Source of the DNA: Oculina patagonica
Taxonomy: Eukaryota
Reading direction: 5' to 3'
DNA length: 64,000 nucleotides
Assembly (NCBI RefSeq): GCF_052425735.1
Contig: NC_135762.1
Coordinates: 33,728,001-33,792,000, forward strand
A program made the translations under genes and the position numbers. Under the pieces are notes generated by a model. That model did not search any database. It saw nothing but the letters and a program-made list of their open reading frames with translations, and had not been told where the DNA came from. Position 1 is the first letter of the stretch. Each line of letters begins with the position of its first letter. Positions 18,001 to 41,890 of the stretch are shown in pieces.

Positions 18001-18445
18001 ATAGTAATAAACTAAACAACGACAATTGAAAAAAGAAATCAAACGAATAGCAATAATTGGAGAGTGAGATACTGGAAAAGTTGCGGCAATACACAGAATC
18101 ATTTTAAATTCATTACGTTTCTCTTCTTTCCTCTAGATATCGATGAATGTAGCGAAAGGAGATCGGGCTGCAGCCAGATTTGCGAAAACACGCCTGGTTC
18201 ATTCGTCTGCCGTTGTAGGAAAGGTTACGAGATGACGCCCAATGGACGATTTTGTAAAGGTAAGAATGGACACAAAATCTAGTTAGAAATGATGATACAC
18301 GCGATTATTGGGAACAACGATTTTTTGCAAAAGTCAGAAAAATGTAGCAAATTTATAGTTGAAGAAACTTTGTGCTAGCAAGTCTATCTTTTTGAACTAC
18401 CTTTAAAATATTACAATATCTCGCCCTGTCTTGCCGTAGTTTGCA

Positions 18446-18513
<68 letters not shown>

Positions 18514-18629
18514 ATGAAAGTCATGAAAAACTATTAATTATAGTTTGGAATCGAGGGGGGGAGAGAAGGAAAAATTTGGGATAAAAAAGGGGTAACCCCA
18601 AAAAATGGTAAAAAAAATTATTAAAAAAA

Positions 18630-18724
<95 letters not shown>

Positions 18725-21700: not shown

Positions 21701-22272
21701 TTGTCAACTTGCGTTCAATAAAAAAATGAACAAAACGGGATTCTGTCAGCTGGATCGATAACAGGTAATGTTTTAAAATCCATTTTAATCTCATCCAGCT
21801 CGGGCCATATATAGTTCCCTCCAATTTTTTAAAACTTGTAGCCTTTTCAATGATGGGAAAACTTTTTTTGCGCACGGTGCAACATCTGTAGTGGAATTTA
21901 TATTTTGAATGTCAGGAAATGGCTGAATGCTAGATTTGTTTGTTTGTGTTATGTGCCATCAAGGGTATTTTTAAGTGTTATCAACTTGAGGCATAAAAAT
22001 TTCATTCTTGTTTTTTTTTTATTGCAGGCTACAGGACACGCCCAAATATCACATTTTACTTTCACCGTGGAAACGAAGAGGATAATTTCGAAATAACAAC
22101 AAATGATGAGGGTAATGGGGTAATTGCATACATTCGAAACAAGAAAAGAATCACAGGCCCCAAGATTTTCTTCCTGGAATTCCGCGGAGATGTCATTGAT
22201 TCCGAGACTAAAGATCTGGCGTCACGCTATGTGCATCGTATGTACGTCTTCGTATCGCGTTACAACTTTTAG
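1..22272 (+). CDS. FBLN1: Fibulin-1/2-like extracellular matrix protein, 5'-partial, 19 exons in window (~822 aa visible)
   Basis: Exons: <1-147, 650-843, 1860-2021, 3073-3210, 4734-4856, 5488-5610, 6471-6605, 13844-13927, 14463-14546, 15218-15289, 15789-15920, 16158-16238, 17072-17200, 18137-18259, 19819-19941, 20363-20473, 20820-20946, 21339-21475, 22028-22272 (TAG). All GT-AG and phase-compatible. Encodes anaphylatoxin-like modules (RICCVKE..C..G; [15 protein letters not shown]), tandem calcium-binding EGF exons (DIDEC/DINEC..C.NT.GS[YF].C) and a fibulin C-terminal domain ending [10 protein letters not shown]. Anaphylatoxin + cbEGF + C-terminal domain is the fibulin-1/2 architecture. The symbol is a family-level call (probably co-orthologous to FBLN1 and FBLN2). 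Confidence 0.92.
1275..1493. mobile_element. MITE with G-rich TIRs inserted at the tail of a SINE
   Basis: GGGGGACAGGGGGG ... CCCCCCTGTCCCCC ends, internal GGCGGGA repeats, TATAG on both flanks. Confidence 0.55.
1494..1735 (-). mobile_element. tRNA-derived SINE
   Basis: Minus strand begins GGAGCAGGGATGGCGCAGTGG (A box) ... GGTTCGATTCCC (B box). A fragment of the same tail (GAGGAAGCCACATCA.GCTCT.GCTGGTT) recurs at ~63014-63045. Confidence 0.8.
3226..3520 (+). mobile_element. tRNA-derived SINE immediately after a fibulin exon
   Basis: GTGGCCGAGAGG (A box) and GGTTCGAGGCC (B box); body TAGCCAACTGGTCTGCCTCC, of which a reverse fragment recurs at ~63698-63730. Confidence 0.8.
3961..4540 (+). mobile_element. 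Crypton-like non-autonomous element with a truncated tyrosine-recombinase N-terminus and long hairpins
   Basis: ORF 4150-4335 [43 protein letters not shown]...LANVLTKF* resembles the N-terminus of Crypton/DUF3504-type proteins (RF..SEE..L.....NTK..T....YL.EK...L..F). Palindrome at 4035-4091 and ~65-bp-arm hairpin at 4388-4532. Family assignment is from motif recall only. Confidence 0.6.
6001..6059. repeat. (ATG)n microsatellite
   Basis: About 19 ATG/ACG units. Confidence 0.95.
8102..10744 (-). CDS. LMO1: LIM-domain-only protein, LMO1/LMO3 (rhombotin) type, ~150 aa, nested antisense in fibulin intron 6606-13843
   Basis: Coding exons: 10741-10744 (ATGG|gtatgt, in-frame TGA just upstream), 10193-10409, 8102-8333 (TAG). 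Protein [136 protein letters not shown]... has two LIM domains and nothing else. GSTLY.KANLILC.RDYLRLFG matches LMO1/3. The 4-nt start exon is less certain than the other two. Confidence 0.92.
8517..9363. mobile_element. TIR element (MITE or fold-back) in LMO intron 2
   Basis: AGCAGGAGGGCATTTGCG (8525-8542) is the imperfect inverted repeat of CGCAAAATGCCCTCCTGCT (9339-9357). The interior is GC-rich relative to the flanks. Confidence 0.6.
12716..12889. mobile_element. Short CAGT...ACTG MITE
   Basis: ta|CAGTAACTCT ... AGAGTTGACTG ends with internal ACGGACACC repeats. Confidence 0.65.
13405..13690 (+). mobile_element. Hairpin-terminated non-autonomous element (same layout as 3961-4540)
   Basis: Short inverted repeat TTTTATACCATGCCAT / ATGGATGGTAAAAA (13405-13541), followed by a ~60-bp-arm imperfect hairpin (13549-13678) with tip GAGCCTTTAGGCGAG. 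Confidence 0.55.
15436..15756 (+). mobile_element. Full-length tRNA-derived SINE with a 15-bp target-site duplication
   Basis: A box GTGGCCTAATGG, B box GGTTCGAGCCC, CORE/MIR-like centre (TTCTTGGGCAAGACACTT...TAAATGGG). Perfect TSD TACAACTCATGTCAT at 15421-15435 and 15757-15771. Confidence 0.88.
16270..17010. repeat. Compound (CAGG/CAGA)n satellite with a ~120-bp higher-order unit
   Basis: Block GGCATGTAGTTATTCAGGCA...GCCAGATACTCAGACAAGTAAACACGGAGG recurs at ~16496, ~16621 and ~16748. Confidence 0.9.
17298..17808 (-). mobile_element. Hairpin-terminated non-autonomous element (same layout, opposite orientation)
   Basis: Long hairpin 17302-17482 (GGTATATTGGAGGATAATGCCC / GGGCATTATCCTCCAATATACC) with tip GCGAAGTTTCG, plus inverted repeat TTATAACCCTCCGATTAATTT (~17487) / AAATTAATCGGTGGGTTATAA (~17786-17806). 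Confidence 0.6.
18448..18722. repeat. (TAA)n arrays and poly-A run
   Basis: (TAA)n at 18448-18512 and ~18692-18723, separated by an A-rich stretch including a >50-nt A run. Confidence 0.9.
18692..19512 (-). mobile_element. 5'-truncated LINE (CR1/L2-group ORF2 C-terminus, 3' UTR and (TTA)n tail)
   Basis: ORF 19302-19514 [27 protein letters not shown]...SLKQFKS.IR is the typical ORF2 C-terminus of CR1/L2-group LINEs. AATAAA plus (TTA)n tail on the minus strand at ~18692-18731. Confidence 0.8.
18820..19130. mobile_element. MITE with perfect TIRs and TA TSD, nested in the LINE 3' UTR
   Basis: ta|CCGTAGAATTCCGGTTATAAGCCC ... GGGCTTATAACCGGAATTCTACGG|ta, with internal TATAAGCCC repeats. A TA target suggests the Tc1/mariner-pogo superfamily. 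Confidence 0.88.
20585..20713. repeat. Short local tandem duplication
   Basis: TTTAAAAGAA.ACTTCATGTACAGGCCACCA.ATGGTGTCAGCATACA occurs twice with a partial copy in between. Confidence 0.8.
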
Positions 22273-24363
22273 TCGGCTTTCGTGTGTCACGCACGTTAAG
22301 TTTCCTTGTATTGTCAAATTCGTAGTACGCCTTTCTTTAGTTTTAAAAAGGATTGTGTCCGAGGTTATAAATTTACTCACTGATAAGATAAAAAGCGAAA
22401 TTACAATAATGAACATAATAGAAGGAGTGGGGGACCATACGGTCAGAAATAACTGTCTAGAAAAATGTAAACGTTGCCCACCTTGGTAAACTTGCTATCT
22501 TATTGTGATTTGGCTACACTAAATTTACATATCTACTTGGGCCCAGCTCTTTTTTTAACTTGCTAAGGGCTAGTTTTTAGGCAAAATAATGACAAGAATA
22601 AGCAGAAGCATTAGAAGAAGGAACACAGTTGTTCTTCGTGTGTTTACACACTAAGAATCAAGGCGGCGTTAAGTAAAAAATCTCTGCTCCCCTTGTACTC
22701 ATGCTTGACTTCCTAGTCAGGGCAACTTAAATACAAAAATTGTTTTCAGGTTGCGTTTACTTTGTCGGTGTTAGCCAGATTTTGGTAAATATAGCTATTT
22801 AGTACTTCTCGAGTTTATTTAGAACAGGACTTTGACTGAGTGAAGTCTAAACATAGAGGCAGAGTTGTTGAGGTACAAACCTGCCTATGAACATGCCAAT
22901 TGTTTTTGCTGCGGTATTTACATTGCATTTTAGCTGATGCTCTGAAACAATATAGCACTCTGGGAGTGCCATTAATCATTCTTTAAATTTATATGTATAC
23001 GTTTATCTATTTTTCGTTCTCGGAAATATTAGCTTGTCAAGCTACTCTAAATTCGAGTTTAAATAAAGTTTTATTATTATTATTATTATTATTTGTACCA
23101 AGCCTCACTTGGCTACCTTGCAGTTTTGCGTAAAGTTTTATTACAACTATGATTGTATAAAACGAGTTTGGATCCAAACACAGTTGTGACGTCATGCTGT
23201 CATTTTTGGCACAAAAATTTGTTTTGTGAGATACAGTATCAAGTAAAATAGTCTTTGTAGTCGGACTTCGTGCGCTTTGCTAGAGGGTCCTCTTGCTGTT
23301 TGTTGACTCTCGATAGGAGAAGAGACAGCCGAAAATCGGTTAGAATTTACTTCATGTAGTCTATCACAAGGAGTGACAAAATGGTCACCACGTCATAAAC
23401 CATGCTTTTTGGTAGAGCAAACTGCATGATGGCTATATTTTCAGAAGCGTTATTTTTTGTTATTTTAGAAGAATGGTTCAGAAGTCTATAGCCATTACGT
23501 TCTTTGACTCATGGACTTCTGTTTAGTGATATTAAAGCATATAAAGGTAGTTGTGTTCAAGAGGATCTTTGAAATATGCCAAATGCCGAAATATCTATAA
23601 GAAGTCTGCCTAAGCAGTCAAAAAAATAAAACGTTTACGCTAATAAACACTTGTCCTTGCTTTATTTATTTCCCTTTTGTTGATAAAAGGAGTAAATTCG
23701 AGGAGGAAATTAAATGGAATTCTTCGTCATACTCGCCCCAGTCTAAGAGAGGACTGGGGAAGAGTCTAAAATGACATACCCCTTTATAGCTTTGATGTAT
23801 GGTCGGGGCTCCCCAAAAGCCATCATGACATATTCAAACAATTGGTGTATCTCGAATGGTTTATATGTGTGTTTTGTTGATTTATCTTGCTGACTGGCAT
23901 GCGTTTTGTAGAGTTCGTGTTGTCCCTCATATCTCGAGTTTTCTCAAAATTGCAAATTAGTGTCCGCTCAGTAAATATAGGACTGCAATATTGAAGGGGA
24001 ACTTTCATCATCTTTTTGAGGGGCTCAGTGGTTTGACTTTGCAGAATAACATTCGACGGCAGCTGACACCAGAGATGAATGTCCAAGACACTGATGTTCA
24101 CGTTTTTCCCAGATTCCTGTAATTTTGAAAGACCTTTCAGAAGATGCTCAATTTTTTAAATTTGTGTTCATAAAATTTTATTCAATAAACTGAGTACTGC
24201 AGTTACAGAACAAATACCCAGTGATCAAGAGAGTGCTCCTTAAAGCTATAGCTAACATTTCAAACTATTTACATCAATTACGTAACTACATGGACACAGT
24301 CCAAGTTAGGCGGTCACTTAAACTGCTGTTTTAAATTTAGCTCTCGGTGAGGCACGTCATTTA

Positions 24364-24705
24364 GGGCCCGGACGCACGGGGGCGAAGATCGCACCAGCCG
24401 GAGACAGGCGCCCGGGGACAGACACCAATGCGCCTGACACCGGGCCGCGCCCGCCGGAGCAGGACAGCAGCGACGACAGGCAGACGCACAGAGACGCAGG
24501 AGGCCAAGGACCGACCACACACACGGCCGCCCCGGCGGCACCGCCGGACGACCGCGCGACAGCGCGGAGCAAGACAGGACAAGCGAAAAAACGGCCCGGC
24601 CGGAACGAGACCCGCGAACGGGCGAAGGGACAGAACGAGACACGGACAAGGGGGAGAGCCGGGGGGCGAGACGGAGAGCCAAATTGTCGTCAGTGCGTCG
24701 GGCCC
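24364..24705. mobile_element. PIF/Harbinger (Tourist-like) MITE with TTA TSD
   Basis: tta|GGGCCCGGACGCAC ... GTGCGTCGGGCCC|tta. A 3-bp TWA TSD and GGGCC termini are typical of PIF/Harbinger. Confidence 0.75.
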
Positions 24706-24931
24706 TTAGCCATTACGATTACAAAGGTGTGAATAAATAATATAAATTAGGTTCTTAAAATCACATCAGTCTAGTCTAAGTATGCTGTAAAAGCCGTGCG
24801 GAAAAAGTTCTGATTCCGAAAAAACAATCAGTTTAAAGTAGTGCACCACTGCTAGTTTCCTATTTAGAAAGTAAGTAAGCTTTTATGGCTTTACTGGCTT
24901 AGTAACTAAAAATCGTAGGAAAGTTGACTAT

Positions 24932-27900
24932 TCAATTTCCACAGCATTTCCACTGAGCTTTCAGCTGCCAGTAGTTTCCACTTTTTATATACACCCCTTT
25001 TGCGTTTCCTGAAATATGAAATAAGAAATGAAAAACATGGTTAAAAAATGTGAGAAGCAAGGTACTTTCGTAAACTTATCATTCAAGGGGGACCTTGCTC
25101 ACAATGCTACAAAAACATTTACTTAAGGTAATGTCGAGAAGTCGCCTTCAAACTCGGCTATAGTCAAGGCTAAGTAATGCGGCGAATAGCTGTTTGTTAA
25201 CCCTATCCAGATCAAGGGGGGGGGGGGGGCGGGGGGACGGAAGGTGCCCGCGCTGACTGTGAACGCTAATAACGTTTTTAAGATTCAACTGAACGCTGCA
25301 ACTTTGCCAGTTTATCTAAAATTTAACTGGGAATAATTTGGGGGTATAGGTTGTTGTGTCAGGAACTTCACGTTACCATGGCAACGGCATTTTGACAGGC
25401 ATGTTTTCCCAAATTTGTAATTATTGTGTTCCTGTTAATGAAAAATTTACCTTAATGCAATTATTTTCACCTTTTTAGAGTTTCATGGCATTGTTTAATG
25501 GATTTTGAGTAGTTTGCAGTAATTTTGGGAGGTTTTCTGATGTTTTGGACAAATTTTAAAATCCAAGATGGCAGATCCAAGATGGCGGCTGTTTTCACAT
25601 CATGATGTAATTGTCACATGATGTGACGTCAACATCCCACGTGACATACATCAAAAGATAGATTTTTGGGCATACTATATATCCTCCAGAGTATCCTCCA
25701 GAGAAGCTATTCTCCCAGAGGAGACATAAGGAAGCAGATGATGATATATCCTCCAAGTTTTAATTGTGATTGCTTAAATAATCTGGAAAATAAGCCCGGA
25801 CTGAATAGGGTTAATTTTGTCGAGCAACAATGTTGCTTTGCAACTTGTAAAGCATTGAACATTGCGCGTACTACCACTCATGTTGCAAGTTGCGCCAACG
25901 TTTTGCGCGAGATAGACATGGGTTCAATTTTGTGTAACATGTTGCCGCACCGTGCATCAGGAGTGGTAATCAGATACGCACAATAAAGCTTTTCAGCTTG
26001 CAATGCAACATTGTTGCGCATAAGTTTACTAGAAAATGTTGCCATATTACTTCGCCTTTTGTAAAAGAAAAGTCAAATTCCACGTTTAGGCTCATCATTG
26101 AAATTCTCAAGTGCAAAATCTCAAGCCTCGTTTCAGTTATCCATAATTTTTCTCTGTGTCATTTGGGAACTATGATGTGTTGTGGGGAGTGCATGGAAGA
26201 ATAAAAAGGAATGAAAGAAGCATATCACCGAGAGAAACGCAGGAAAAATAATGACCATCAAGCTTTGGACTTTTAATTAGATTATTGTTTATAGTAGATT
26301 CTTAATTTTTTAGTACATTAGAGAGGGCCACAAATTTATTAGTTGTAAAACTATTACGTGTAACCCTCTATAAATAAAGTTTGATTGATTGATTGATTGA
26401 TTAAAAAACCCGTCCAAATGATGTTATGATTGAATTTGCAAAGTTAACGGAACGACGACACAAGAACAGGAGACGAGATAGTTACCTCCCCAGATAGTTG
26501 AAGTCCCCTTCGTCTTGGCAGATTCTGGATTATCAGTGTGCGAGTAGTTCTCCTCGATCGTAACCAAGTTCTCCTGTATGTTGCTGTTCTTTGCTTCTTC
26601 CCATACATGTTTATCGATTCCATACCAGGCCCCTTGGGTGCCTTGTTTGCGCATGTAAGCACGGCCGTTGCATGCTATGCCATACAAGTCGTCCCCATCT
26701 TGGCCAATCACATAGCAAACTTGTTGGTCCATGGCTGAGGAAGAAATCAATACAAAACGATGACTCAATCACATTAGTTTCTTAACATTTGTTTACACAG
26801 ATAGACGGCATCATTCATTCCCTTTTGTTAAGCTAACGATTCATTACCCGAACAAATTTTTATCATAATACAAAAAGTTCTAAGTTTTTTAACTTTACGA
26901 GTAGCCCTGGCCACGGATATCTAAGTCAACACAGGTTGGCGTATTATCCTGACCTGCGACTCCTCTTCCTTCGTGTACTTGATGTGACTTTCGTTCATTG
27001 ATACTTCCAACACAAGTCGACCACCTCAAGCAGTGGTTTTGCTAACTTAAATAATGCCACGCATGGTACTAATGTAAATCCGAAAACACTGATTAAAGCT
27101 TTCTTTTCAACGTGCTGTCAGTTTGGTAACCCAGCTGATGTCTGTACCCAAGTTCATTTGTGTCGTCTTTCGATTCCGTGTGGCCAGGGCTTTGGATGAT
27201 ACCCTTGTTATCCATGTAACAATAAAGTCAAAAGGTAACCAGTAAAAACCTTGTGGTATTTGGTGGCGTATTTTAATCCCTGCGCTTTTCACAGACAACT
27301 GAGATGAAAGAAAACTCGAAAGCTCTTGAGTGTACGCTTGTCGAGTCTTACTTTTAAACCAGAAATAACTTCATGTAAAAATATAAATTATATCTATGTG
27401 TTACCAATCCAGCTGTATGTCTTGTCAGCAGTTGAGTAGCAGCTTGACTTCACCCTGGAGTAAAAATAAACACCAGACATGATTAGTCCAAATTCCCTTT
27501 ACTGATTACAATATATTTGTTTTGATGTGAGTTGTGAGTAACAATAAACACCAGACACGATTAGTCCAAATTCCCTTTACTGATTACAATATATTTGTTT
27601 TGATGTGAGTTGTGAGTAACAATAAACACCAGACACGATTAGTCCAAATTCCCTTTACTGATTGCAAGATATTTGTTTTGATGTGAGTTGTGAGAATCTA
27701 ACAGTACATCATCACAATACTCATCCTCTAGCTAGTTGTTGACTATCCGTACTCTAGTCCTCTTTGTAGCTCTTTGTTTGGCAATGTAATGATATTGTAC
27801 GGAGTAATAAGTCACAGTGATCAGATACACTCTTTTTATTTTATAAGAATATTGTTTTTCCGACCCAGGCTGAATATTCTTATTTTCCTGTTGAATTTAG

Positions 27901-30900
27901 GCTGAAAACATTCTTATGAACATTCTTAGATAATACCCTTTAATACCGTTTGACATTTCCGTTTCAGTACGTAATGGGTATCAATTAATGTACTGTTCAT
28001 CGAACTGTCATGAGCATCGAACATTTTGGCTAGTGCAAGTTTTTATCGTGTTATTGGATAGTTAAAGGTTTTGCCGTTTAGAGAGATAAATGATTTTATA
28101 CGGTTCAGTTAATTAAAAAATATCTTATTCTATTTTATTTACAAATTTTCAACACAAAATTTTGTTCTTTTCAAAATCTCAGCCTCAGATTTATTCTTAA
28201 AATATTCTTAAAAATTCGCAAATTTCAGCCTTGATATTCTTATAAACTAGATTCTTATAAAATAAAAAGAGCGTAAGACGCCTAGGGTATATCTACCAGC
28301 CATACCTAAGAACACTAGAAACCTTATATTTAAGCGAAAAGAAACATTTTGGACTAATTTGGAATTTAAGTTACACTGAAGGCCACAAGAACAGACACAC
28401 AAGGTTTTGATAACAGTTTGCTCATTTTGAGAAGACATAGACCCTTGCCATAAGAATTATCTAGACCAAAAAGTATCGAGTTATTCTATCGAATTCAAAT
28501 TGCCTTGATTTTACCAAAAAGGGTTTGGATAGCCTGTCCGCCTGTACTTTGTTTTAGTTCTGATTACTTTAGAGTCAGAAAATTGTCAAAATATCTGTTT
28601 AAATGTAATATATTTACCTGTCCTTTGATTTCTGGCACACGTATAAAATGTCATTGGTTGGGTCCACCAGAAATCCTCGGCTATACACCTCTGGAATGAG
28701 AACAAATGGTGTATTATAAGATTACACTCAGTAATTTATTAAGTTTTAATTTGACGTTTTTGTTTCTGACTTTTCATGTATTAAAAGCGAAACCTCCCAA
28801 CAGTTAAAGGTCTTTCCCTCCATCTACCAACTTCTGAAAATATAGATGGAGCTAGGTTGGTAGGATAAATAAAAAATAAAACCATTAAACCAAAAAAACT
28901 CAGGAATGGACGAGCGGAATTAAACAATTCCGAGGGGCTTATTGATAGTTTTGTAATTGGTTTTTAAAAATGAATTTGAACTTTGAGCACAGGAATTATA
29001 CTTACCTGAAAGTTCTGAAGGCGTTTCCACAGGGGCACCATCACCTGAAAATACAATTGCAACAATATTGACAATTAATCTGTTATAAAACATGTGGGCT
29101 AAGTCTTTTAGGACGATTTTCACTTGAGTATCGAAAGTAATTTTCACTTGCTTTGGTTTGGCATCATTACGCTTATTGATTGGTTGAAAAAACTCGCGTC
29201 ATGTTCTCAAGCAATCAGAAGTCAAACCAAAACCAATCGTGACTCGCTCACAAACATTTTCCCGCGCTTCGCGCCGAAAACATGTACTTTGATTGGTTCA
29301 ATGTATTGTCCACTGCGATTGGCCAGAGTGATTACTTTGATTGTATAGCCATGCAGGGTAAATGATGCACGCCCTGGCCTTTGGCGGTAAGCCATTCTCG
29401 CGTCCTAATCGATTAGGAGTCAAGAATGGCCCCTCAAAATGTCGCAGTGCTCGCAATGCTCGCAAAATTTTAGTGGGTGCTCGTTTGCTCGTGCTCGCAC
29501 ATTTTTACAAGTGCTCGCATGCTCGGTTTTTAGTGGAGGTAAATTTTTTAAAAGTGCTCGTTGCTCGCAAGGCTAATTTTTCCAATGCTCGTGCTCGCAA
29601 AGAAAAACGCTGTGCTCGCATGCTCGCAAATGCTCGAAAGACCATTTGATACCCCTAATCGATTCTTGTTCGTGTTTTCTCAAGTACAAGTAGTGGTATT
29701 GTGTTGCTGAGTGTCAGAATTAAGAATGACGGGTTTGACCTCCCCGAGGCCGTGCTTAAATCGATAACAGTAACTGCAATAAAACCTAAGTCAAAGAAAA
29801 AGTCACTATGCAAATTTTAATTTACGGATATAGGAAGTTTCAATGATTTCGTGCAAGGAGGTTTTAAGTATTCAACCCTCCCCCACCCGCTCTTCAATAA
29901 TCGAATATGCCCGGCATGAAGTTTATGGTTCCCATTCTCCTCTTTACCTGGCGACTTAAACTTGAGAGACACTGGTACGGGAGGAGCTCCATACACCGCT
30001 GACATACTGAATGGACTGTATGACAGCTGTATCGGGGACACGGCGTAAGTGTCGCCTGGCGGCATAAGTCCATCAGGGTCCAGATTGCCTTCCACTGAGA
30101 AGGAGAAACGGTCCAAGAAGTGCATTCTATTGTCGAACTAGAAATAAAACATGACGAAATCAGAAACATGTACAGACTTGTCACGGAGGGCCCGCTGTTG
30201 GTTGCTGTTTACCTCGCTGTTTTCCTCGCTGCTCTGAGGTACGGAAAACGCGCCATTCTCAAATTTATAAACAACGTTTCTCTAGGTTTAATTTTCTACT
30301 CACGCTAAACTTGGGTCCTTGCTGTGTTTGCTGGTAGGTCAGCTCAGGATCATGGTCCAACTTAGTATACTTCACATATGGCGGTATCATCCAGAACACG
30401 TTCACATTGTCGGCGTATTGCTGTGATTGTTCGGCGTGATAGATGGTTCCATTGAAATGCACTTTAGAGCTGAGGAGATTTCAAATATCCTAAATTACCA
30501 TCTAACTAATTCATCAATGGATTTACAACCGTTCCTAAGAGTGATTCTCCAAAAGAATCAATAACAATACTTTTGGGTTGAGCTTTACCGTTAGCTTGAA
30601 GTCGTTTGCACTGATTCTTTGTCATCCCTACACCTGGGACAACAGCAAATGCTAAAAATAGGTCACCAAGGGTGACATGAGTCTAATGCCGTATGGCATA
30701 GTGATACAGATTGCGCGGTTTTCGTAAGCCGGTTAAAATTGGTTAGAGGTTTGTGTTCGGGAGTTTAATTTAAAATGCTTATAGCAAGCTAGGGGACGTG
30801 GATGATTATGGATGAAAACGAAACAGTCATAAATGTTATATGCTTCACAAAATTTAAAGTATGAACAGGAGTTGATGTTACTTCTTCCGTATTGTCCGTA

Positions 30901-33900
30901 AAAGCAGAAACGATTAAACATTTGGACAAGATTGCGTGACGATTTACAAAAAGCATGTTCATTACAACAAGGGTTGAAGAACTTCACATCGTTTTCTTTC
31001 AGATTTTTCACCATTTTGATGATGACTCTTGAAACAGATTTTGCAATAAAAGCACTTGAAATAGTGACTGTTACTCCATTGTACTGTAAGCACTTAGTGA
31101 CAGATTTTCCTAATCAAAAGCCCTCTGGGCTTAGTGTCTCGTGACTCTTTTCAGAGTTTAATTTATTTGAAATTTATTTTATCTAGTTTTGAAGCTGTGC
31201 TCCGTCGGCGAATCGAAGGTCTATATTGGCATGACGGAGCACAGCTTTAAAACTAGATATAACAACCACAAGCTCTCTTTCAAGCATCGTAAGCATTCCC
31301 ACGACACTGTCCTATCAAAGTACATCTGGGACCAAAGAGACAAAAACACCGATTTCTCAATCAAGTGGTCAATTGTCACGCGAGCAAGCTCTTACAGGGG
31401 AAACCAGTCTCGCTGCAATTTGTGTCTGACAGAGAAGCCTCTGCATTCTATCCGCTGACAGATCTACTCTCCTCAATAAGAGATCTGAATTAATCACCAA
31501 GTGCAGGCACGAAAACAAGTTTTATGCAGCCAGTCAAAAGCAGGATCGCTCAAACCGCCCTCCATGAGTGTAGTTTAAATTTTCTTTCAACTGCTATTAA
31601 CGGCACAGTCTGATGATCGCCTCGTGCGTGAAACTTTAAGTAACTGTCCGTGCAGTCTCAATCTTTTAATTATAGTATCCCGCTCTGCATGTATTTGCAT
31701 CGAGCACTCGTACGATTTGTGAAACCATTTACATTTTTCTTTGTTTATATATAAGATTACATGCTTAAAAACAAAGTTTTGAAATCGATGCCTTAATGGT
31801 ATCCATTGCGATCACTATCACGGTAATTAAGCGTCCATTGATTCATATATAATAATTGATTTTGCTATTTCTGTCAGGCGGATAATGTTTGTACTTATAA
31901 TTGTCACGCGCTTTTCCGATACCTTATCAAAAGCGATTTTTCCAAGCAGCCGAAGTAGCTGAAAAAAACAACATGTAGCGTTGAACAAAGGACTCCGATA
32001 ACAGCAGCAGAAATTTGAGAAATTCTCTGATAAGGTTCTGAATTGATTGTCGCAAAATATTATCTCTCAAGTAACGCAACCCGTGACATGTAATTATATA
32101 TAGCGTGCACGTAAATTTAGTGCTTTTGGAAAAATCCAACCGGTTGACCAAAATTTTGCTTTACTAATCCGAAAATACTTGGATCAATGATCTGAAGCCA
32201 CTAGAGATTTTTAGAAGATCTTGGGAAAGGATTCGAAAAAACTTGGCCCAGCGGTTTTTGTGAAATAGGTTCTAAACCATACGGAAGTTTGCAAATTAGA
32301 TAGGATAGCAGATAGTTTTATATTTTGAACGGGAAACAGGTTTAATAGAACAGCCACTGTGTGCCTAGAGAAGTTGTATACTTTTAAATTTCGAGTGAAA
32401 TTTGCACTGATCATTTCGCATCATTCTTCGCTCTCAGATGCTTTCTCGTCACATTTGCACGCTAAAGAACACTGTTTTTTTTGTAAAAATTTTGTATTTA
32501 AACTATTTTAGTTAGGATCGGAAAAATATTATTTTTTTATGAAAATTTTTACGGGGAGGAATCGTTCGATTTCTGATAAAAGAGGACAAGCCCCATTACC
32601 AAAACATATGTATTAGTTGTGTTACACAGAGCCCTACAGTAGGTTCCGCGTAAGGAACGGTGACCGCCACCAGGTAATAACCATGTCAATCTCCATGGTA
32701 TCACAAAGCAAAAGACTCCGTGACATTTAGCGAGGTAAATAGCTAGTTCAAGTACCCTAGAGAAATGGCAGAGAGAGAAAGAGAGGAAAGAAAATACGAT
32801 GGCGTGAGGTATTCTAAACCTCAGAAGGTCAATTGCGTACTTTTATTTTTACAATTAAGGTAAATTTCTTATGGAAGGGATTTTTTTATTTACTCGCCAG
32901 CTCCAGCAGCGCGCTCAAAACAATTCCTCAAGGCCGCGCTACTTTAGGGCGCGCCACTCACCCGAAGAATGTATAAAGATTTTGCGACAGGGGAGCGGCG
33001 GGGCTTTTTTTTCAGAGACTGGCTATGCATTTGTCGAGGACGCAGGAATAACACGGCTACCAGTTTTTTTTAGGAAAAATTTCTACACAATAGCCCCAAC
33101 CCTAACCTACAGTTGATAAACCAGCGCGTTAGTTGCGACCTTTTAAAGAAACATATTTCTTGAAGAAATTCCGGCGGCCCAGATCACAAAGCAAATGTTG
33201 AATGCGGGAAAATCCGCGGCCCAAAAGAAATGTTGACATGGGGGAAATCGGCGGCCCAGAAAGCAAACACGCATGGAATGCACCTCTCCCCCTGTAGAAT
33301 ATCTCGTGTCGTCATGACAACGTCATGACGTCACGAGACAAAAGGTGTAAATGCTCACGTCAATATAATGATGACTTTTGAACGCTGGAAACTAGGCATT
33401 ATTATCGAGCTACCATACACAGGAGCGAAGACTGTTTATCAGATGTACAATTCGCGAACACACTTCCATATCAAGTAACCATTTTATGATTTTTCTAGCT
33501 GTAAGAAGAACTTAAGATCTCTGAGAGTCGTAAAGATGAAATTCGATTTAGTGTATGGCAAAGGCCGGGACAGTGTAATACTGCAAAGCGGCCAAACAAA
33601 CGGATTTTGATTTAGTCGCGTAACTTGATTTACATTTATCCATGTAATCTTTTATTTTTGAAGGTTTTTGTTTGCACTGTAAAGAAAAAATTGGTCAAAA
33701 TTCGAATGACTTAAATACAAAAACCGAGGTAAAGTTTTCTATTTTTTAAAACAAAATAAATATTTGGTCGCATTGTGTAAATAAACGCGAGTCGCCGTCG
33801 AAATATTTTTTCTCAAAGACGTCTTGCTTTTTAAGCAAGACGAAAACACAAGTGCTTAACTGAACTGAAAACGAAGATTTATTTTCACAAAAAGCTTACA

Positions 33901-36900
33901 AATGTCTTAACTGGAAAATTATTTCGTCATGTTCAAGTGTTGAATAATCGTGACTTGAGAAAGAACTTTTAATTATGCGTGGGAACACGTGTCGCTGATT
34001 GGCTGTTTTTAATTGAAACTAATCGTGCGTGTCCGTACGGAGTCCGTTCTTGCAGCTGATCATTGTTTTCTACATTACAGCAAACGATTATCGATCCCGA
34101 ACCATTCCCTTGGGATTGCTAACAGCTTTTTTCATATAACAAAGAGTCTAATGCGCATGCGCAAAGCGCACGCAAGCATTAGACTCAAAAAACCATCGCA
34201 TTTTATTCCAGTTGCATTGCTCCTCCGATTTTTCTTCCGTTTCCCCTAAAACTACAACACATTCACAAACACTTCCAAATTGGATACAAGCAAAGCTGAG
34301 TTAAGCTGACTGGGCTTCCTCAGTTGTTCAGCCTAATTTTTTTACCTTTCATGAGACCCTTTCGCTGCAATACCCAACCTTGTCAAAGCTAAAAATCCAG
34401 TGAGCCTCCATTCTCATCAAAAAATGTGCTCAAGAATGTGATTTTTTTTTCATCAGTAACGTTTATAAGTTTATCTTACCTTCTTTCTAGAGTGGTCGCT
34501 TCACTGCATGGCAGCTTAGTGCCCGGAAGTTCACAAGTCGCTTGAACCTGTAAGATTGGTCTCCTGTCGACAGGAACATCAGCAATCAGCGCTACGTCAC
34601 CGATCCACATCATACGCTTGCCGCCACGAACCCCCACCCCTACCCAGTGCTTTGAACCATTTGTCACGTGTGCGTGGTCGTTCACAACGATCTCGAACTC
34701 CAGCATGATCTTGTTATCTGGGTGATCCACAGTCCCGATGGTATTTTCTACCGTGCCGAAGTCGATCGTACCGCGGTCGTAAAGCTTCTGATCTCCGACG
34801 GTGGAAGTGAGTTGTGCAGTTATTTGGCTAAGGGCAGTGTTGTTTTTGATGTTTGTACCAACTTGGACGACACGAAGTGAGACAAGAGACATGATTGAAG
34901 TTTCATTCACAGGAAGGATGACCTGTAATAGTAAAATATCACTGAAATGTTTCCTCTTCATTACTCGAGCTGAAAAACTGGGCGTTTTTCTGCAAACGTG
35001 ACCATTAGAGACTTGTTAAGTTGACAAGCGCAACACTACCCCGACTATTCTTGATGTAATTGCTTTGTTTTTCAAAGTTATTCTCTCACCAGTATTACGT
35101 TTATAAAAAAGAGGCACTAAGTTTTCCATACGCCATTGTTGTTGGCATATTACAAAGAAGCACTATAAAGTCCAGTTATTTTATGGCTTTTGTCACGAGA
35201 AAAACTAGAAAGCTCTCGCGTGTATTTAAGAAGTTGTCACCTAGCTCTGCAAGACGCATGCTCATAGCAGTCAAACGTACGGCGCGTGCGCATTCTTGCC
35301 AAGATTGTTACCAAGTGATTTTGCTTAAAGTCAATAGATAAAGCAAAATGTGATAATTTAGTACTTGTTGGCCCCTAGCATTATCTTGTTATGTCTTTGC
35401 AATGTGCTAATGTTGTAACGATTTCTTACCAATGTCTAGCACATTATGCTTCGAACTCTTCAATTCAATTCAAGTCATGCAATGTTTTAAAAACCGGAAG
35501 CGATGATGAAGTTTGGCGTTTGATCGCCGCGCGGGGACACAATTAGGACGCCTTAATTGCTCAGGAACCTGACGTTTACTGATGACTTAGTTATTTCTTC
35601 GAGGGGGGTCCCAAACAAAAAAGCGCCAGTGTTAACGACTGTGAGAATCAAGTAATAAGTACCAAGACAACTGTAAAATTCAGTGAGATAAAACCTCCTA
35701 CCTCTACTTTTAAAGTGGAAACGATTCGTCTCATCAATATGTTGAAGGAAAACTTGGCGCGGCCACCGATTCGTATCTGATTGGTCGAATTGTTGAGTTT
35801 TAGCGAGAAACCTGGGACTCCAGCCACGAAGGGCGGTGAAGGCTTGTGGGTAGTGTTGAGTTTATCATCTCCTCTCAAGTTCTGGTAATTGAGCTGAAGA
35901 AAGATATCAAGTGGCTCGAGTGGAGAAATTTTGTCGCTGACAATCAGAACTAAATCCCCAGTTATCTGTTGCCCTGAAAGATAAGAAACAATGTTAATAA
36001 AAAGAAATTGTCCGTCACAGGAAGGAATCCAGTCAAGCGCAAGGCACGCGAATTTTGTAATTAGGCACTTTGTTAAATTGCCCGCTACCATTTGGTGAAA
36101 AATAGAGTGCTGAAAACCACCATTAACTAATTAATTTTAACAATGTTGGTATAGATATGATGAAAGGATATTAGAAGATATAATTGGCTACAAACACCAC
36201 ATTTTGATAATGAAAGCTACTGCTTACCTTTTGCCAACGTTGCGACGGCGATTTCACCGGATTGAAAATGACTGTTTATCGTCAGTGGCTGGTCTGAGCC
36301 ACCTGGCTCATCATAGGTCCCCTCCAGAATTTGCAGTGTGTTAGAGTAGAATGATACTCGCACGTTCTGCGCGTCCTCGTAAGATGTGTTTTCCATGTGA
36401 TTGACAGTCCAGTTGACAAACAGCTTGTCTCCGATCAAGTATCGATTACTGGCAGTGTCGTTGGTAGTTGTAAATGTGGCCGTTAGCGATGGCTCACTCT
36501 ATTTGTAGCAAAAATGAAAAAAAAAGAAGTGTAAAAAATAATAAAAAGTAGCGGACTGATAAATTGATTAAACTTTTTATTATTTAACTCCACTCAGCCA
36601 GTGGAGGTATCACTTATCTGCACACAAAGCTAAACACAGTTCAAAGCCTGGTTATCGGGCAAGAAAAACCTTTTCTATAAGTTATAGTGCGTAATCTTGC
36701 TGTATATGTCGTTTGTAGCTCGGCGCACCTCACAAGATGGCCGGAATACAGAAACACTTGTTACAATATACACAAATACTGCATACTCCAAATTGTTTTT
36801 CATGTAAGTCTTTTTCTTCAGTTTCTGAACTCAGTCGTCAGTCAGTCAGTCACTCAATCAGTCAGTCAGTCAGTCAGACAGTCAGTCAATCAGTCAATCA

Positions 36901-37286
36901 AGCTTTCGAAACTAATATTACACCAACTTCTATTCCCTGAGGGAATCTGAGATTAAAAAGTGATACGCACCTTGTACACATACAGCGCCTCTTGACCCAC
37001 CCACAGCATTTGATAGCCACTGCGCATGCCTGCTCCCACCCAATGTTTTGAGTCATTGGCCAGCATGGGATGATCTCGTATAGTGACGTTGTATTCTATG
37101 ACGATCTTGTTAAGGGATGCATCGCTCCCACGTACCTTGTAGGGAAATAAAACAAATGAAGAAGAAGGGAAATTGAATTAGCAGATTTTGTTCTTAGCGT
37201 ATTTGGACGTCTTGCTTCTTTTCAACTCATGGAATATCACAAAACGAAATGTTGGGATGGTGAGGACTCACGTCACGTGTCAACAC

Positions 37287-37344
<58 letters not shown>

Positions 37345-40300
37345 TAATAATAATTTGCTAATTTATATAGTGCATATTATTGTCACATCAAGTAACACAC
37401 ATCACGTTGCATGGCATCTCGACACGTCATGTCAACCAGTCTTACAAATGGGTATGATTTCTGCTTCACTCTACGGTATACGGTTTCAGTCATATTTTAT
37501 TATATATGAACTAGATCTAGACAAGACTCTCTAAATCATACACATAACTTAGTATCGCCATCTGTGACAATTCCACAGAGGGTTTCACTTACAGTTAAGT
37601 TTCCGAAGTCCAGAACAGCCCGATCATTGAAGGGCGCTTCGTCACTGGAATCGTATGAAACAGGAGCAGCCGGTATTCCGCCTCCAGAAGTCTTGACGTT
37701 GCTTCCCACGCTCTTGACTTGTACATTGTGCAGCTCCATGAAGGAGAAATCATTGATGTTGGTGCTTATCTCCACCAGCAGCGAAAAGTCCAGATGGGGC
37801 ATGGTGATAGTCATGGTATAACCCGTGGTATTGCTAACCCATAAGTCTGCAAATCATATCAAAGGCAAGGCAGTGAATATATCAACCCCTAAGATCTAAT
37901 CAGGAACACTTGCAATCAGTATGATTTGTAAAACGACATATGTGTTTTTGGGTGACGTTCAATTAAAATTGTGCTGTGTTCATTTTTTACTACAGCCAAG
38001 TAAATAACCAAAACAGTATGATTATAAATCAACATGTGCTTGATCAAGTTGATACTCATCAGTAATACACTTACATGAGTACGAATTCCTTGTCATTGAT
38101 ACTGTTGGGAACACAGCATACAGGGTTGGCTGTGAGGGAGCTGGGCCATAATGGTAATTGTCGCCGCCGCCATCCTGGCCAGTGACTAGCACAGCAAAGT
38201 AAAGATTTGACAAAGGCTGAATCGAGTCTGTAACCTTAGCCCCGAAAGTAACAGACACCAAATCTGCGCTACCAAGCGTTGTGACATCGAAAGAAATTGC
38301 GCTGGAGTTGAACTGGGGCCCTCCAGTGATACTCCCGACGCCGGCCAATACTGACCAGGAATTTTGTACAGGCTCCAGGAACTGGGACCAGAGAACAACT
38401 TTCAGGTTGTTTTTCAAATCCACCGCTACTGACTGGTTGTGTGTCAAGTTAAGTTGGAACGAGATCGTGTCGCCAATGTTGTAGTAGGTGACATTATGAA
38501 TTACTGGGTTGAAATCAGCTTTCAACGACTGCGAGACTGTCGAAGGCTAAAAAACAATGAATTATTCACCACAACTAAGAAAATTTTTTATACCTGTTTC
38601 TCTAACTATCAAAGAGCTCTGAATGTTTGCCTCCTTGCTTAACGCGCGATTTTAAAAGTCATTGTATTTAGCTGAGTAAATCGACGCATAAAGACTCTCG
38701 TTTGTTCTCGAATAGCATAAAACAACCGATTGGTAGGAAAATCTTGTCAGTAGTGACGTAAAGGCTTACATTTGGGATAGAGCGTCTGACAACATGATGC
38801 ATTTCCTCTGCGTCGTCATCATCACAGTCGTCTTGGAATTCATTTACACAGGCTGCGTCTGAAAAAAGTGTTTCATAACAAGTTTAGGGCATTTGCGTAT
38901 GTTGCATTTAAAAAGGACCTCTCGGGGTCTGGGGAGAGGGGGGGGGGGGTGAGGGTGTTTACACGTTTCTTTGAAGTTTCTCTCTTGTTCCCTACATTTT
39001 TTCTTTTTTTTTTCTAGGAGGCTCACGAAGATCTAAAACAAAAAGACTGCGCTCAAAATTATGGCATACTACTGAAGCTAAAGTAGATAAGTGTGTAGTG
39101 GTTCCATACTTAATAAAGAATTGCTGTTTCCAGCTGCTAACGATTCATGTCGCTGACGCGCGCATTTAAAACATAATATGTATTATCTCTCGTGAGTTAA
39201 CAGACTCGCTGTTTGCAGTACATATCACCATAGCAATTAACACACGCAAGCTTAGCAAGCACTTGCTTTACAAGAACTGTCAAATTGATTTCGCTTGTCT
39301 GTGTTCGTAAGCTAATTTTCAACATCATCGCCCGCTCTTATCAAAACCGGCCCTTTCCACTAGTAGACCGTCTCTTGTTAGTGAAGGAGCTCCTTGTTAA
39401 TCTAAAAATATTTTGACAACCTTAGGACGCTTATCATCGTCAACAAGAGAACAAGAAAAAGCCAAAGTTAAATTTCATGTCATCACGGTTTGCAGCACCT
39501 GTAACTTTGAAACTTCATTCTGAATAAATCAGCTTTTCAGTTCACCATTTTTCTTTTTCCTTTCTCATTACATTTTCCCTTGTCTGCTTTTGACAGAAAA
39601 TAAGGACCATTACATATAATTCCGCAAAATGTTGAACTTTTTGCTTCTTATTGCGACTAGCTAAAATTTTAGCAATCCACAAAGTAGTTTTTGATATTGA
39701 TGTATGGTAAATTGCCGTTCGAACTAACATAAACGTTTGAAAAATTTCCGGCATCGCGTTCAAGTTATTTCCTCGTGTATGACATTCCGTTCAAAAAGGA
39801 AAAGATCTGAGATACAATTCTCGAAACAAGAAAGATAAAAACTTATAAACAGGACTGATAAATTCAAAGCTTTTCATATTGAGTTTAACTACTCCAATAT
39901 CTCTTTAAGCTAACTGACCAAATTTAATGACATCTTTTCAGTATGTAGATATGTGATTCTAAATTTTAGTCCCCGCTACAACACGCTGTCAAACTCTGAG
40001 ACATTAGCAAGTTGAGCCGGCACAAACGACAGCTGAAATCCAAGCTCCATTCAAATAGAAATACAATCTACTTTGTTTCAAGATTAAGATCCTAAAACTT
40101 AGCCAATCTGTCCTATTTTATTGCAATGTCTTAGCCGGCTTTCTTTTCCGATCGTAGATCGTAGTGCGTAGCGCGCATAAAAGGTCATCAGTTATCAGAA
40201 ATCTTTGAAGAAGATAACTTTATGCTGTAAATACTTACTCGCCGCATTGTAAAAGGAAAGTTGTTTTATAAGGCAAAACAAAAAATGTCTTACCCACCGC

Positions 40301-41890
40301 ACACGTCTTCAGGTTGAAAATGTAAATTTAAGTTTACTAGGTTATACGCAGCTCTACAAGATTGAACTCTCAACTAACATTGTAACTATTTTACTGCTGT
40401 GATCTCTTTTGAACAGCGCCAGCGGTATCAAGGGTTTTTTCCAAACCCAATTTCAGGAGTGAAAATTGTCGGTTTCTGACGAATTTCAGAAACATTTGTT
40501 TTTAGCAAATTTAATTTAGTTGCTTAGCTTCATTATGAATTTCTCACTATACCTGGTTTTTAGTGTGAAATGCTGTGCTGGTTTTTAATGTGCAAATGCT
40601 GTTTATTTTCTCCCCGTTTCAGCTGCTACTTTCAAGACACTACGGAATAAACTGACTAGGGCCTCGGGAAAAGAAATTCAATGACGTTTACTCTGAAACG
40701 TTTTCACAAACTTATGTAAGCTTTCAAATACAAAAAACAATTGACACTATTTCGTGTATATTCAATAGAAGAAACAATTTTTGTTCAATCCCTTAAAGCA
40801 GACCAATACTGGTCTTTTGGTTGTTTCGTTAAGGGAAAAAATGTTAAGTTGCATGTAGGTCAGACGATTTGTAACTGTACGTAAGAAATAAATTATTTCG
40901 TTTCACATGGCATATATCCAAACCACTTCAGTATTAGAAAACAAATTTTCTTTTGTATTCAGGCGTTGAAGGCAACCTACTGTTCCTATATTGTTGCACC
41001 GTTATTCCCAAGGATGGTCGAAACGCCAAAATTATAAGAATGATTGTGTATAGAGCAGATTCAGTATCGTATTGAGTTACAAACCAACATACAGTAAAAC
41101 CAAACAAGCTTCGTTATGTGCAAACTTACATTGCACGCTGCGACACTTTCGTTCGTTAATAATACATGACAACGGAGTACTGTACTGCAATCGACGAAGC
41201 TTTTTACTATAGTTGTAAACGGAAGCCGAGCTCTGCCTCCAGTAAAACCATAATGCAATTAAACGTTTAAAGAAAGGCTATTTATGGTCAGTTAAAACTA
41301 GTCGGGGACGGCTTTTAAGGGTTTGGACGTTTGAACACAGGTATATTTCGATTCGTTTTGATTAAAAGTTAGAAAGCTAAATATTTTTCACGCGTAACAC
41401 AAAAACATCTGTTGCGAGCATTAATGTAAATTCAAAAAGGGTTGTTCTTGTTGTTAGACTTCACTGATAAAAGCAAAATGTTTTATGCAATATTTTTGAG
41501 GTCTCTATTCTACTACTGACCCATTTAAAGATCCGAAGCTAAAAGGCAACTCAGCGAAATTTCGTCCTGTGAAGATCGCTCGCGTACTGAGCAAAATTTA
41601 TTACATCTCAATTTTTTTCGCATTTTGCTTCGTAACAATTCATAATTTCCAGTTTGTTATAATCAAAATCGGCGTGAAATCGGTTCGAATGGTCGTAAAA
41701 TTTCAATAATTTGCGGTCATGGATTAATCGAAAATTTTCGCTAATGTGCTTCGAGGATTAAGCGTAAATAAAGGAAACAGAATTGTTATTTTTTATACTT
41801 ACGAGCCATGGGTCTGCCGGCAACGAAGAATGTTGCAAAGCAACAAATAAGGAAATATACGCCGCACAATGAGGTTGTACAAGCGTTCAT
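24932..41890 (-). CDS. Uncharacterised large secreted glycoprotein (~965 aa, 15 exons): signal peptide, acidic pro-region, repeated beta-sandwich units, Cys/Trp C-terminal domain ending WKCCGN
   Basis: Exons 5'->3': 41803-41890, 38770-38858, 38075-38546, 37593-37846, 36971-37135, 36228-36498, 35702-35973, 34480-34922, 30304-30469, 29948-30137, 29006-29044, 28618-28690, 27405-27454, 26486-26734, 24932-25008 (TGA). Total 2898 nt, all GT-AG, phases join into one open frame. N-terminus MNACTTSLCGVYFLICCFATFFVAGRPMAHAACVNEFQDDCDDDDAEEMHHVVRRSIPN. Many N-X-S/T sequons; no transmembrane segment seen. Confidence 0.85.
25201..25810. mobile_element. piggyBac-type MITE with TTAA TSD
   Basis: ttaa|CCCTATCCAG ... 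CTGAATAGGG|ttaa. Confidence 0.8.
27465..27694. repeat. 78-bp tandem repeat, 3 copies
   Basis: AATAAACACCAGACA.GATTAGTCCAAATTCCCTTTACTGATT...GTTGTGAG starts at 27465, 27543 and 27621. Confidence 0.95.
27828..28273. mobile_element. TA-target MITE
   Basis: ta|CACTCTTTTTATTTTATAAGAAT ... ATTCTTATAAAATAAAAAGAGCG|ta, with internal ATTCTTA repeats. Confidence 0.8.
29415..29656. mobile_element. MITE with 8-bp TSD and TGCTCG repeats
   Basis: AATCGATT on both sides (29407-29414, 29657-29664); imperfect TIR AGGAGTCAAGAATGG / CCATTTGATACCCCT; more than ten TGCTCG motifs inside. Confidence 0.7.
31195..31745 (+). mobile_element. 5'-truncated Penelope-like retroelement (GIY-YIG endonuclease C-terminus, one frameshift)
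   Basis: KVYIGMTEHSFKTRYNNHKLSF...LSKYIW...IKWSIV..ASSY....RCNLCLTEK, continuing after a frameshift near 31438 as CILSADRSTLLNKRSELITKCRHENKF to TGA at ~31567. YIG, CNLCL.EK and LLNKRSE..KCRH are Penelope EN motifs. Confidence 0.88.
31601..31650 (+). ncRNA. Minimal type I hammerhead ribozyme in the 3' region of a Penelope-like element
   Basis: CGGCACAGT-CTGATGA-TCGC-CTCGT-GCGT-GAAAC-TTTAA-GTA-ACTGTCCG. Stem I ACAGT/ACTGT, core CUGAUGA and GAAA, short stem II CGC/GCG, minimal stem III, GUA cleavage triplet ending at 31642. Lies ~35 bp after the stop of the Penelope GIY-YIG frame. Confidence 0.8.
36838..36900. repeat. (TCAG/TCAA)n microsatellite
   Basis: Seen directly. Confidence 0.85.
37288..37353. 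repeat. (TAA)n microsatellite
   Basis: Seen directly. Confidence 0.95.

Follow-up and report, generated by a model that had tools for sequence, protein, structure and literature searches.

The gene described here lies on the minus strand (41890..24932) of a 64,000-nucleotide stretch of the genome of the coral Oculina patagonica (NCBI RefSeq assembly GCF_052425735.1, contig NC_135762.1, positions 33,728,001 to 33,792,000 of the forward strand). This whole stretch is called the window, and all coordinates are counted from its first letter. We consider it likely that this is an intact and expressed coral gene for a secreted extracellular stalk or adhesion protein, and that the pairs of A and B domains in its product are the animal counterpart of a repeat of about 300 residues found in giant bacterial surface proteins. 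The predicted protein has five beta-sandwich domains of ~130-180 residues each, A1 (residues 58-217), B1 (218-352), A2 (353-533), B2 (534-662) and A3 (663-~808), followed by a conserved, Cys-containing C-terminal domain of ~155 residues (~809-965). DUF11 (PF01345), the bacterial domain in question, has been renamed CLIPPER; it is CnaA-like, builds the stalks of fibrillar adhesins in bacteria and archaea, and frequently contains an isopeptide bond between Lys and Asn (Costa et al., 2025, Protein Sci, PMC12617251).

An earlier note, made from the DNA sequence alone, had described the stretch 29948-38546 as an orphan secreted protein with A-B-A-B-A repeats that resemble DUF11 or isopeptide adhesin modules. 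It had proposed either an undescribed extracellular family or an ancient domesticated transfer. That proposal is still the best reading, and it gains strength from the homology of domain B to the domain that accompanies DUF11 in giant adhesins of bacteria. The interval is inside a real gene but covers exons 3-10 only. The protein cannot be called an orphan, as Orbicella, Porites, Pocillopora and Nematostella have orthologues and at least seven bilaterian phyla have relatives.

Similarity to a two-domain repeat of bacterial adhesins

The alternating repeats, including all peptides quoted in the earlier note, are present in the minus-strand translation. Internal repeats were measured by local alignments against shuffled sequences. 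B1 and B2 align with a score of 196 (shuffle mean 29, z 33.7) and A1 and A2 with a score of 80 (z 8.5); a BLAST self-comparison of the protein left the internal repeats unreported. By sequence, A3 (RPILQV...SKVHFNGTIYH...) has no significant similarity to A1 or A2 (z 0.4-1.4 by local alignment, 0.2-2.6% by hhalign). Thus, of the A-B-A-B-A pattern, the A1/A2 and B1/B2 pairs stand by sequence, and A3 is an A-type unit by predicted fold only.

A phmmer search with the piece of exon 8 that codes for domain B2 (34533-34922) against 1.84 billion representative proteins gave 70 matches at E ≤ 1e-3, and all named ones were metazoan except one bacterial protein, P0054 (2975 amino acids, E 2.9e-5). P0054 is encoded on a 718-kb contig (L006:10001-18928) among bacterial-type genes (SecA, major facilitator superfamily transporters, peptidases), and it carries Pfam-confirmed DUF11 domains (59 bits) between B-like stretches. 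Searching with its repeat region retrieved at least 575 giant proteins, with named sources in Alphaproteobacteria, Chloroflexota, Acidobacteriota and Planctomycetota, which are annotated as 'isopeptide-forming domain-containing fimbrial protein', DUF11 or TIGR01451. A hidden Markov model (HMM) was built from 66 B units, all of which came from named animals or this window. It matched 114 of 120 giant bacterial DUF11 proteins with up to 210 bits per protein and up to 43 bits per domain; the reversed-sequence control gave no match. The bacterial B-like matches recur every ~295-305 residues, and each is directly followed by the start of a Pfam DUF11 domain. Within the bacterial unit the first ~120 residues (the B-like part) match no Pfam family and residues ~121-240 are DUF11 (up to 49 bits). 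As a separate observation, the ~120-residue B-like domain of P0054 and of P0100-P0218 constitutes a bacterial domain family of its own, undefined in Pfam and found in hundreds of giants.

In profile-profile comparison, the animal B profile aligned with the bacterial B-like profile at 98.6% (hhalign, E 7e-16, 113 columns), and as judged by these profiles B is homologous to the bacterial domain that precedes DUF11. A1 and A2 aligned with the bacterial DUF11 part at 91.8% (E 7e-7) and 82.8% (E 9e-6), respectively. The bacterial B-like and DUF11 parts aligned with each other at 92.9% (E 4e-7), which suggests that B may itself be a distant CLIPPER relative. For the following comparisons we also used P0082, the nearest orthologue, which is 80.7% identical end to end (955 aligned residues) and falls into a 90%-identity cluster with a protein of Orbicella faveolata. 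An HMM of the bacterial DUF11 units matched in register A1 of the window (15 bits), A1 of P0082 (24.5 bits) and A2 of Nematostella (32.8 bits). In the coral protein, A1 plus B1 span 295 and A2 plus B2 span 310 residues, and B1 runs directly into A2 as B2 does into A3. The B-to-A junction is also alike, with the coral SEPSLTATF aligned in register to the P.L.I.K with which DUF11 begins in bacteria. Given the same order and the same junction, the coral A-B pair is therefore read as the counterpart of the bacterial two-domain repeat, at an identity between animal and bacterial units of about 20-35%.

Structure prediction is consistent with this assignment. The model of A1 plus B1 from the orthologue (P0082:56-348, alignment of 108 rows) reached a predicted local distance difference test (pLDDT) of 91.4 and a predicted template modelling score of 0.83, and that of A3 plus the C-terminal domain (P0082:650-961, 22 rows) a pLDDT of 83.6; A1 and B2 of the window are 77% and 88% identical to the matching P0082 segments. 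In the AlphaFold DB, the top 30 clusters for the A1 plus B1 model were mostly 'DUF11 domain-containing protein' (E 5e-13 to 7e-10), and DUF11 proteins likewise dominated the AlphaFold DB and ESM Atlas lists for the A3 model. ESM sequence features of exon 3 (A1) gave DUF11 at 0.95. In these models A1, B1 and A3 are predicted to be CnaA-like or CLIPPER-like Ig-type beta-sandwiches, as in PDB 9IFR, the CLIPPER domain of the Acinetobacter silvestris fibrillar adhesin B9T28_05395 (PMC12617251). The earlier assignment to DUF11/isopeptide-type modules thus held in the fold searches and in the A1 and A2 profiles, but not as membership in Pfam DUF11, as discussed below. A DOMON label for domain B, which came from ESM features with low recognition (1591), was dropped because it had neither fold nor profile support.

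Gene model, secretion and phyletic range

The gene has 15 exons with GT-AG borders at all of its 14 spliceosomal introns and a complete open reading frame of 965 codons' worth of protein with no internal stop. Splice sites were set with P0082 as a guide, and exons 10-15 are placed by orthologue alignment only. The exon chain agrees with RNA: in four public runs, spliced contigs (the longest of 3408 nucleotides) join exactly at modelled introns 2-7, six introns to the base, and the loose contig ends at 38858 and 34480 continue into exon 1 and exon 9, respectively. The gene is well represented in transcript assemblies of several studies, and its G+C content resembles that of the surroundings. 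The exons, in the order of transcription, are as follows.

41803..41890, minus strand: exon 1, start codon (41890-41888) and predicted signal peptide; matches P0082 residues 2-31, is the sole strongly hydrophobic stretch and is entered by RNA from the loose end 38858
38770..38858, minus strand: exon 2, acidic Cys-containing pro-piece ending in the dibasic site HHVVRR; orthologue alignment including Nematostella, joint 38546/38770 in four runs
38075..38546, minus strand: exon 3, domain A1 (residues ~58-217), CLIPPER/DUF11-like beta-sandwich by ESM features, hhalign, fold model and fold searches
37593..37846, minus strand: exon 4, N-terminal part of domain B1; joints 37846/38075 and 37135/37593, B1-B2 similarity
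36971..37135, minus strand: exon 5, C-terminal part of domain B1 with the SKHWVGAGMRSGYQMLWVGQ motif; gene model, orthologue alignment and RNA joints
36228..36498, minus strand: exon 6, N-terminal part of domain A2, begins SEPSLTATF; hhalign, joint 36498/36971
35702..35973, minus strand: exon 7, C-terminal part of domain A2; joints 35973/36228 and 34922/35702
34480..34922, minus strand: exon 8, domain B2 and the first A3 strand (RRPILQVQATC); phmmer family matches, RNA loose end 34480
30304..30469, minus strand: exon 9, domain A3; orthologue-guided splice, DUF11-like predicted fold
29948..30137, minus strand: exon 10, end of domain A3; orthologue-guided gene model
29006..29044, minus strand: exon 11, 13-residue linker GDGAPVETPSELS; mini-exon found via the P0082 alignment
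28618..28690, minus strand: exon 12, start of the C-terminal domain (YSRGFLVD...LYVCQ); orthologue alignment
27405..27454, minus strand: exon 13, C-terminal domain, with RVKSSCYSTADKTYSW as a degenerate Asp-box-like motif; orthologue alignment and family consensus
26486..26734, minus strand: exon 14, C-terminal domain; orthologue alignment
24932..25008, minus strand: exon 15, end of the C-terminal domain (…WQLKAQWKCCGN) and stop codon; tail kept as far as Nematostella

Several features of the introns were also recorded. Run X5, which is labelled with a different organism, has the joint 35975/36248 with 12 other letters between, and the other three runs have 35973/36228; this difference at the exon 6 end is specific to the lineage. 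Intron 5 contains a short-period repeat (36816-36966) of GTCA/GTCC-like units, which in one frame reads SQSV... and where the summed contig depth is about 17,000-31,000 in all four runs; the sequence is therefore repeated very many times in these data sets. Intron 4 holds a long simple repeat (37230-37376; poly-I, poly-N or poly-Y in translation), and reads are cut at 37280-37359. The largest intron inside 29948-38546 is intron 8 (30470-34479, 4 kb). Rfam at gathering threshold gave no match between 24000 and 42500.

From its sequence the product is likely to be secreted, soluble and heavily N-glycosylatable. The signal peptide (residues 1-~31) is the only hydrophobic segment, with the sole hydrophobic 19-mer at the N-terminus, and the protein contains 19 N-x-S/T sequons. 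No membrane anchor was found in the 965 residues, which end in ...AQWKCCGN without a hydrophobic tail, and bacterial sorting or anchoring signals (LPXTG, IPTL-CTERM, Por tail and the like) are absent from the protein. The pro-piece is acidic, contains Cys, has ~25 residues in corals and ends HHVVRR, followed by S; this site is kept as far as Nematostella. Since the dibasic site is conserved, the pro-piece may be taken off by a proprotein convertase. The C-terminal domain (exons 11-15) has conserved cysteines, ends in WKCCGN and is kept from cnidarians to hemichordates. Its family consensus has two Asp-box-like SxDxGxxW motifs, which are degenerate in the Oculina patagonica copy, and in Pfam one family member only gave a weak BNR match.

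Full-length coral orthologues have 930-966 amino acids. Coral and anemone members are from Porites, Pocillopora, Orbicella and Nematostella. Orthologous loci include pdam_00019095 in Pocillopora, LOC110056598 in Orbicella and LOC5509412 in Nematostella, and Stylophora has an orthologue as well. Further members were found in a brachiopod (Lingula), an annelid (Owenia), a nemertean (Lineus), a flatworm (Macrostomum), molluscs (Pomacea, Ostrea, Nucella, Lymnaea, Patella, Sinanodonta, Octopus, Physella, Dreissena), echinoderms (Diadema, Anneissia) and hemichordates (Ptychodera, Glandiceps). All of them are annotated as 'uncharacterized' or are named after an accessory domain only, and Pfam has no model for domain B or for the C-terminal domain. 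A search with the tandem B units of Owenia for a wider phyletic range added only four more proteins, all of lophotrochozoan type. Domains were mapped across the family with HMMs built from the cnidarian orthologues. Corals and Nematostella have the collinear order A-B-A-B-A3-C. In bilaterians the B units stand in tandem, in some cases with A3, and are combined with the same C-terminal domain and often with a discoidin domain (F5/8 type C). Two proteins were discarded: P0003 (4271 amino acids, the third-best phmmer match) is a repeated chance match of 39 residues with no family-HMM match, and P0066 was removed on the same grounds.

The same genome contains two distant B-domain paralogues with 27-35% identity, at G000:C2:3300790-3301245 and G000:C8:10977155-10977640. 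About 7.5 kb downstream of the first of these, the C-terminal tail is matched as well.

Alternative explanations and origin of the family

Several observations weigh against a secreted stalk protein related to CLIPPER. In a six-frame search of the whole genome, Pfam DUF11 found no match at E ≤ 1, and the control genomes matched. Pfam found nothing significant in the single exons and in six coral orthologues, one of which reached E 0.23. A2 of Nematostella scored 22.8 bits (E 1.2e-4), below the gathering score of 24.6 bits, and among 108 units of relatives three matched, all sub-threshold (best E 1.8e-5). A3 aligned with the bacterial DUF11 part at 2.4% by hhalign, which is not significant. The structure models were made from an 81%-identical orthologue and not from the window's own sequence. 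Neither the VIA and ESM Atlas shape lists, which were filled by A3, nor ESM features or Pfam recognised a relative of the C-terminal domain. A literature search by ten orthologue accession numbers or locus names found no paper and no record of an expression site, a partner or a proteome, and one for DUF11 together with cnidarian terms found no paper either. The proposed function is read from domain architecture only. For the direction and timing of a transfer, the tree of B units discussed below is unrooted, and its bacterial sample comes from one similarity search.

The isopeptide bond deserves a separate comment. The earlier note had found the expected lysine not evident, and this was confirmed and extended: in the hhalign register, the Lys/Asp/Asn triad is absent from all nine cnidarian sequences compared. 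The Lys column holds F, L or D in A1 and F in A2, the Asn column F in A1 and L, M or C in A2, and the Asp column N, S, D or a gap without conservation. The triad is present in many CLIPPER/DUF11 members, not all. As the Pfam model stays below threshold and both the triad and a sorting signal are absent, we do not count the protein among the members of DUF11 as Pfam defines it; judged by its profiles, it is a divergent DUF11 relative that lacks the isopeptide.

One alternative is that the protein is a product of a cnidarian secretory organelle or gland (nematocyst, mucus or skeletal matrix), with a structural role instead of adhesion; its signal peptide, acidic pro-piece and dibasic site would send it into regulated secretion. 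Nematocyst and gland proteins of cnidarians often have pro-pieces with dibasic ends. The signal peptide, the acidic Cys-containing pro-piece and the HHxxRR site are found in all coral orthologues, the Nematostella site follows extra epidermal growth factor (EGF)-like and cadherin domains, and the strong representation of the gene in transcript assemblies from several studies would also suit such a role. However, the B and C-terminal domains are shared with bilaterians that have neither nematocysts nor an aragonite skeleton, cleavage at RR is a prediction from the sequence, and the literature search by accession returned no proteome or atlas paper. We regard this explanation as unlikely.

A second alternative is that the domains are ordinary metazoan Ig-like sandwiches (integrin thigh or calf, alpha-2-macroglobulin macroglobulin or receptor-binding domains, transglutaminase barrels), so that the likeness to DUF11 and pilins reflects a common fold only. 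An integrin assignment had been considered in the earlier note, and in the Foldseek search of PDB the legs of integrin alphaV and alphaIIb do come first (E 6e-10, TM score 0.4, root-mean-square deviation ~10 over two domains), ahead of streptococcal and staphylococcal adhesins; the sub-threshold Pfam DUF11 scores point the same way. The sequence comparisons point the other way. Profiles of A and B matched nothing among all PDB sequences at E < 0.5, with no integrin chain at E ≤ 10, but they do match the bacterial profiles, with B against the partner domain of DUF11 as the strongest pair. Moreover, the domain order, the EPxL junction and the period of ~300 residues equal those in bacteria, and the AlphaFold DB and ESM Atlas lists consist mostly of DUF11 proteins. 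An ordinary animal sandwich is thus improbable.

Contamination of the assembly or a recent horizontal transfer into corals, which might be suspected as many environmental and host-associated bacteria have DUF11 giants and a published survey took eukaryotic isopeptide-domain matches as contamination (PMC12617251), is excluded by the introns, by the spliced transcripts and by the split between animal and bacterial units in the tree (SH-aLRT 100, see below), and further contradicted by the G+C content, by the orthologues in other corals and a sea anemone with relatives in many bilaterian phyla, and by the low identity to bacterial units.

With the secreted stalk protein preferred, its origin can be considered. 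A quick maximum-likelihood tree was built from 40 animal and 35 bacterial B units. In it, all animal units are on one side of a single separating branch and the bacterial units are on the other (Shimodaira-Hasegawa approximate likelihood ratio test, SH-aLRT, 100). This fits a single origin before the split of cnidarians and bilaterians, and the module would have entered animals, or already been present in them, before that time. Transfer from bacteria to animals most simply accounts for the distribution, with many bacterial phyla on one side and, among named eukaryotic matches, only animals on the other; the direction is taken from this distribution only. It is tempting to speculate that an early animal acquired the whole two-domain stalk unit (B plus CLIPPER/DUF11), lost the cross-link and founded an undescribed metazoan-wide secreted family with a new C-terminal domain, a scenario to which we give about an even chance.

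By analogy with bacterial fibrillar adhesins, the five sandwiches might form a stiff, elongated and glycosylated extracellular rod. This rod would be held by its hydrophobic core and by glycans rather than by covalent isopeptide bonds, and it could present the C-terminal domain as a binding or assembly head.

CLIPPER/DUF11 and related isopeptide domains count as hallmarks of surface fibres in bacteria and archaea, and the CLIPPER survey reported the family in bacteria and archaea only, with eukaryotic matches set aside as probable contamination (PMC12617251). Here, such a module is found in an intron-rich, spliced animal gene with relatives across many phyla. If the reading is true, eukaryotes would have their first bona fide CLIPPER-type family, and domain B would be a new family common to bacteria and animals. 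The gene is also a tangible example of an ancient module that adhesins of bacteria and the extracellular matrix of animals share, or that was transferred between them. Two domains outside Pfam are defined, B, which occurs by the hundred in giant bacterial proteins, and the C-terminal domain. The protein could also serve as a natural experiment on the stability of a CnaA-like domain without an isopeptide bond. For coral biology, a well-expressed secreted protein is flagged for cell atlases and for skeleton, mucus and nematocyst proteomes.

Comparison with known systems

The legs of integrin alpha chains (thigh, calf-1, calf-2) come first in the structure search of PDB; the coral protein has neither an FG-GAP propeller nor a transmembrane segment. 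The Ig-like domains of Gram-positive pilins and MSCRAMM proteins (EbpB, BcpA, RrgB, SpaD, SdrD and the C-terminal part of AgI/II) share 5-13% identity with it and no match at the sequence level. In addition, sortase-assembled Gram-positive pilins with CnaA and CnaB domains have an isopeptide triad, an LPXTG sortase signal and a pilin motif, all of which the coral protein lacks. With CLIPPER (PF01345) the coral protein has in common that domains are used in tandem in a long secreted protein. A1 and A2 also align with bacterial DUF11 units in register, and the 'EP.L' start and the '...V.D.I.PL...' motif are part of this alignment. The differences are that a Lys-Asn bond appears impossible, that Pfam scores stay sub-threshold and that the host is an animal.

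Within the animal family, the Nematostella vectensis protein A7SEI0/XP_032234226 (P0004), annotated as 'Cadherin domain-containing protein', is an orthologue with 39% identity, collinear from HHxxRR to WKCCGN. Its residues 1-250, before HHxxRR, hold extra EGF-like and cadherin domains that the coral proteins do not have; if the site is cleaved, the anemone would free a separate EGF-cadherin fragment. The bilaterian F5/8 type C proteins (Lingula, Owenia, Ptychodera, Lymnaea, Diadema and others) resemble the coral protein in the B domain, which they carry in tandem, and in the C-terminal domain; recognisable A1 or A2 domains between the B units are lacking, and a discoidin domain is often added.

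Also close are the giant bacterial proteins such as P0105 (Roseomonas fluvialis), P0113 (Vineibacter terrae) and P0054, which have the same repeat of a B-like and a DUF11 domain with a period of ~300 residues. These giants are 2000-5000 amino acids long and can have 13 units or even more; their consensus P.L.I.K contains the isopeptide Lys, and they bear bacterial sorting signals. In contrast, the coral protein has two and a half units and begins with a eukaryotic signal peptide and a pro-piece. Its gene has introns, the protein carries N-glycosylation sequons, and its C-terminal domain is unrelated.

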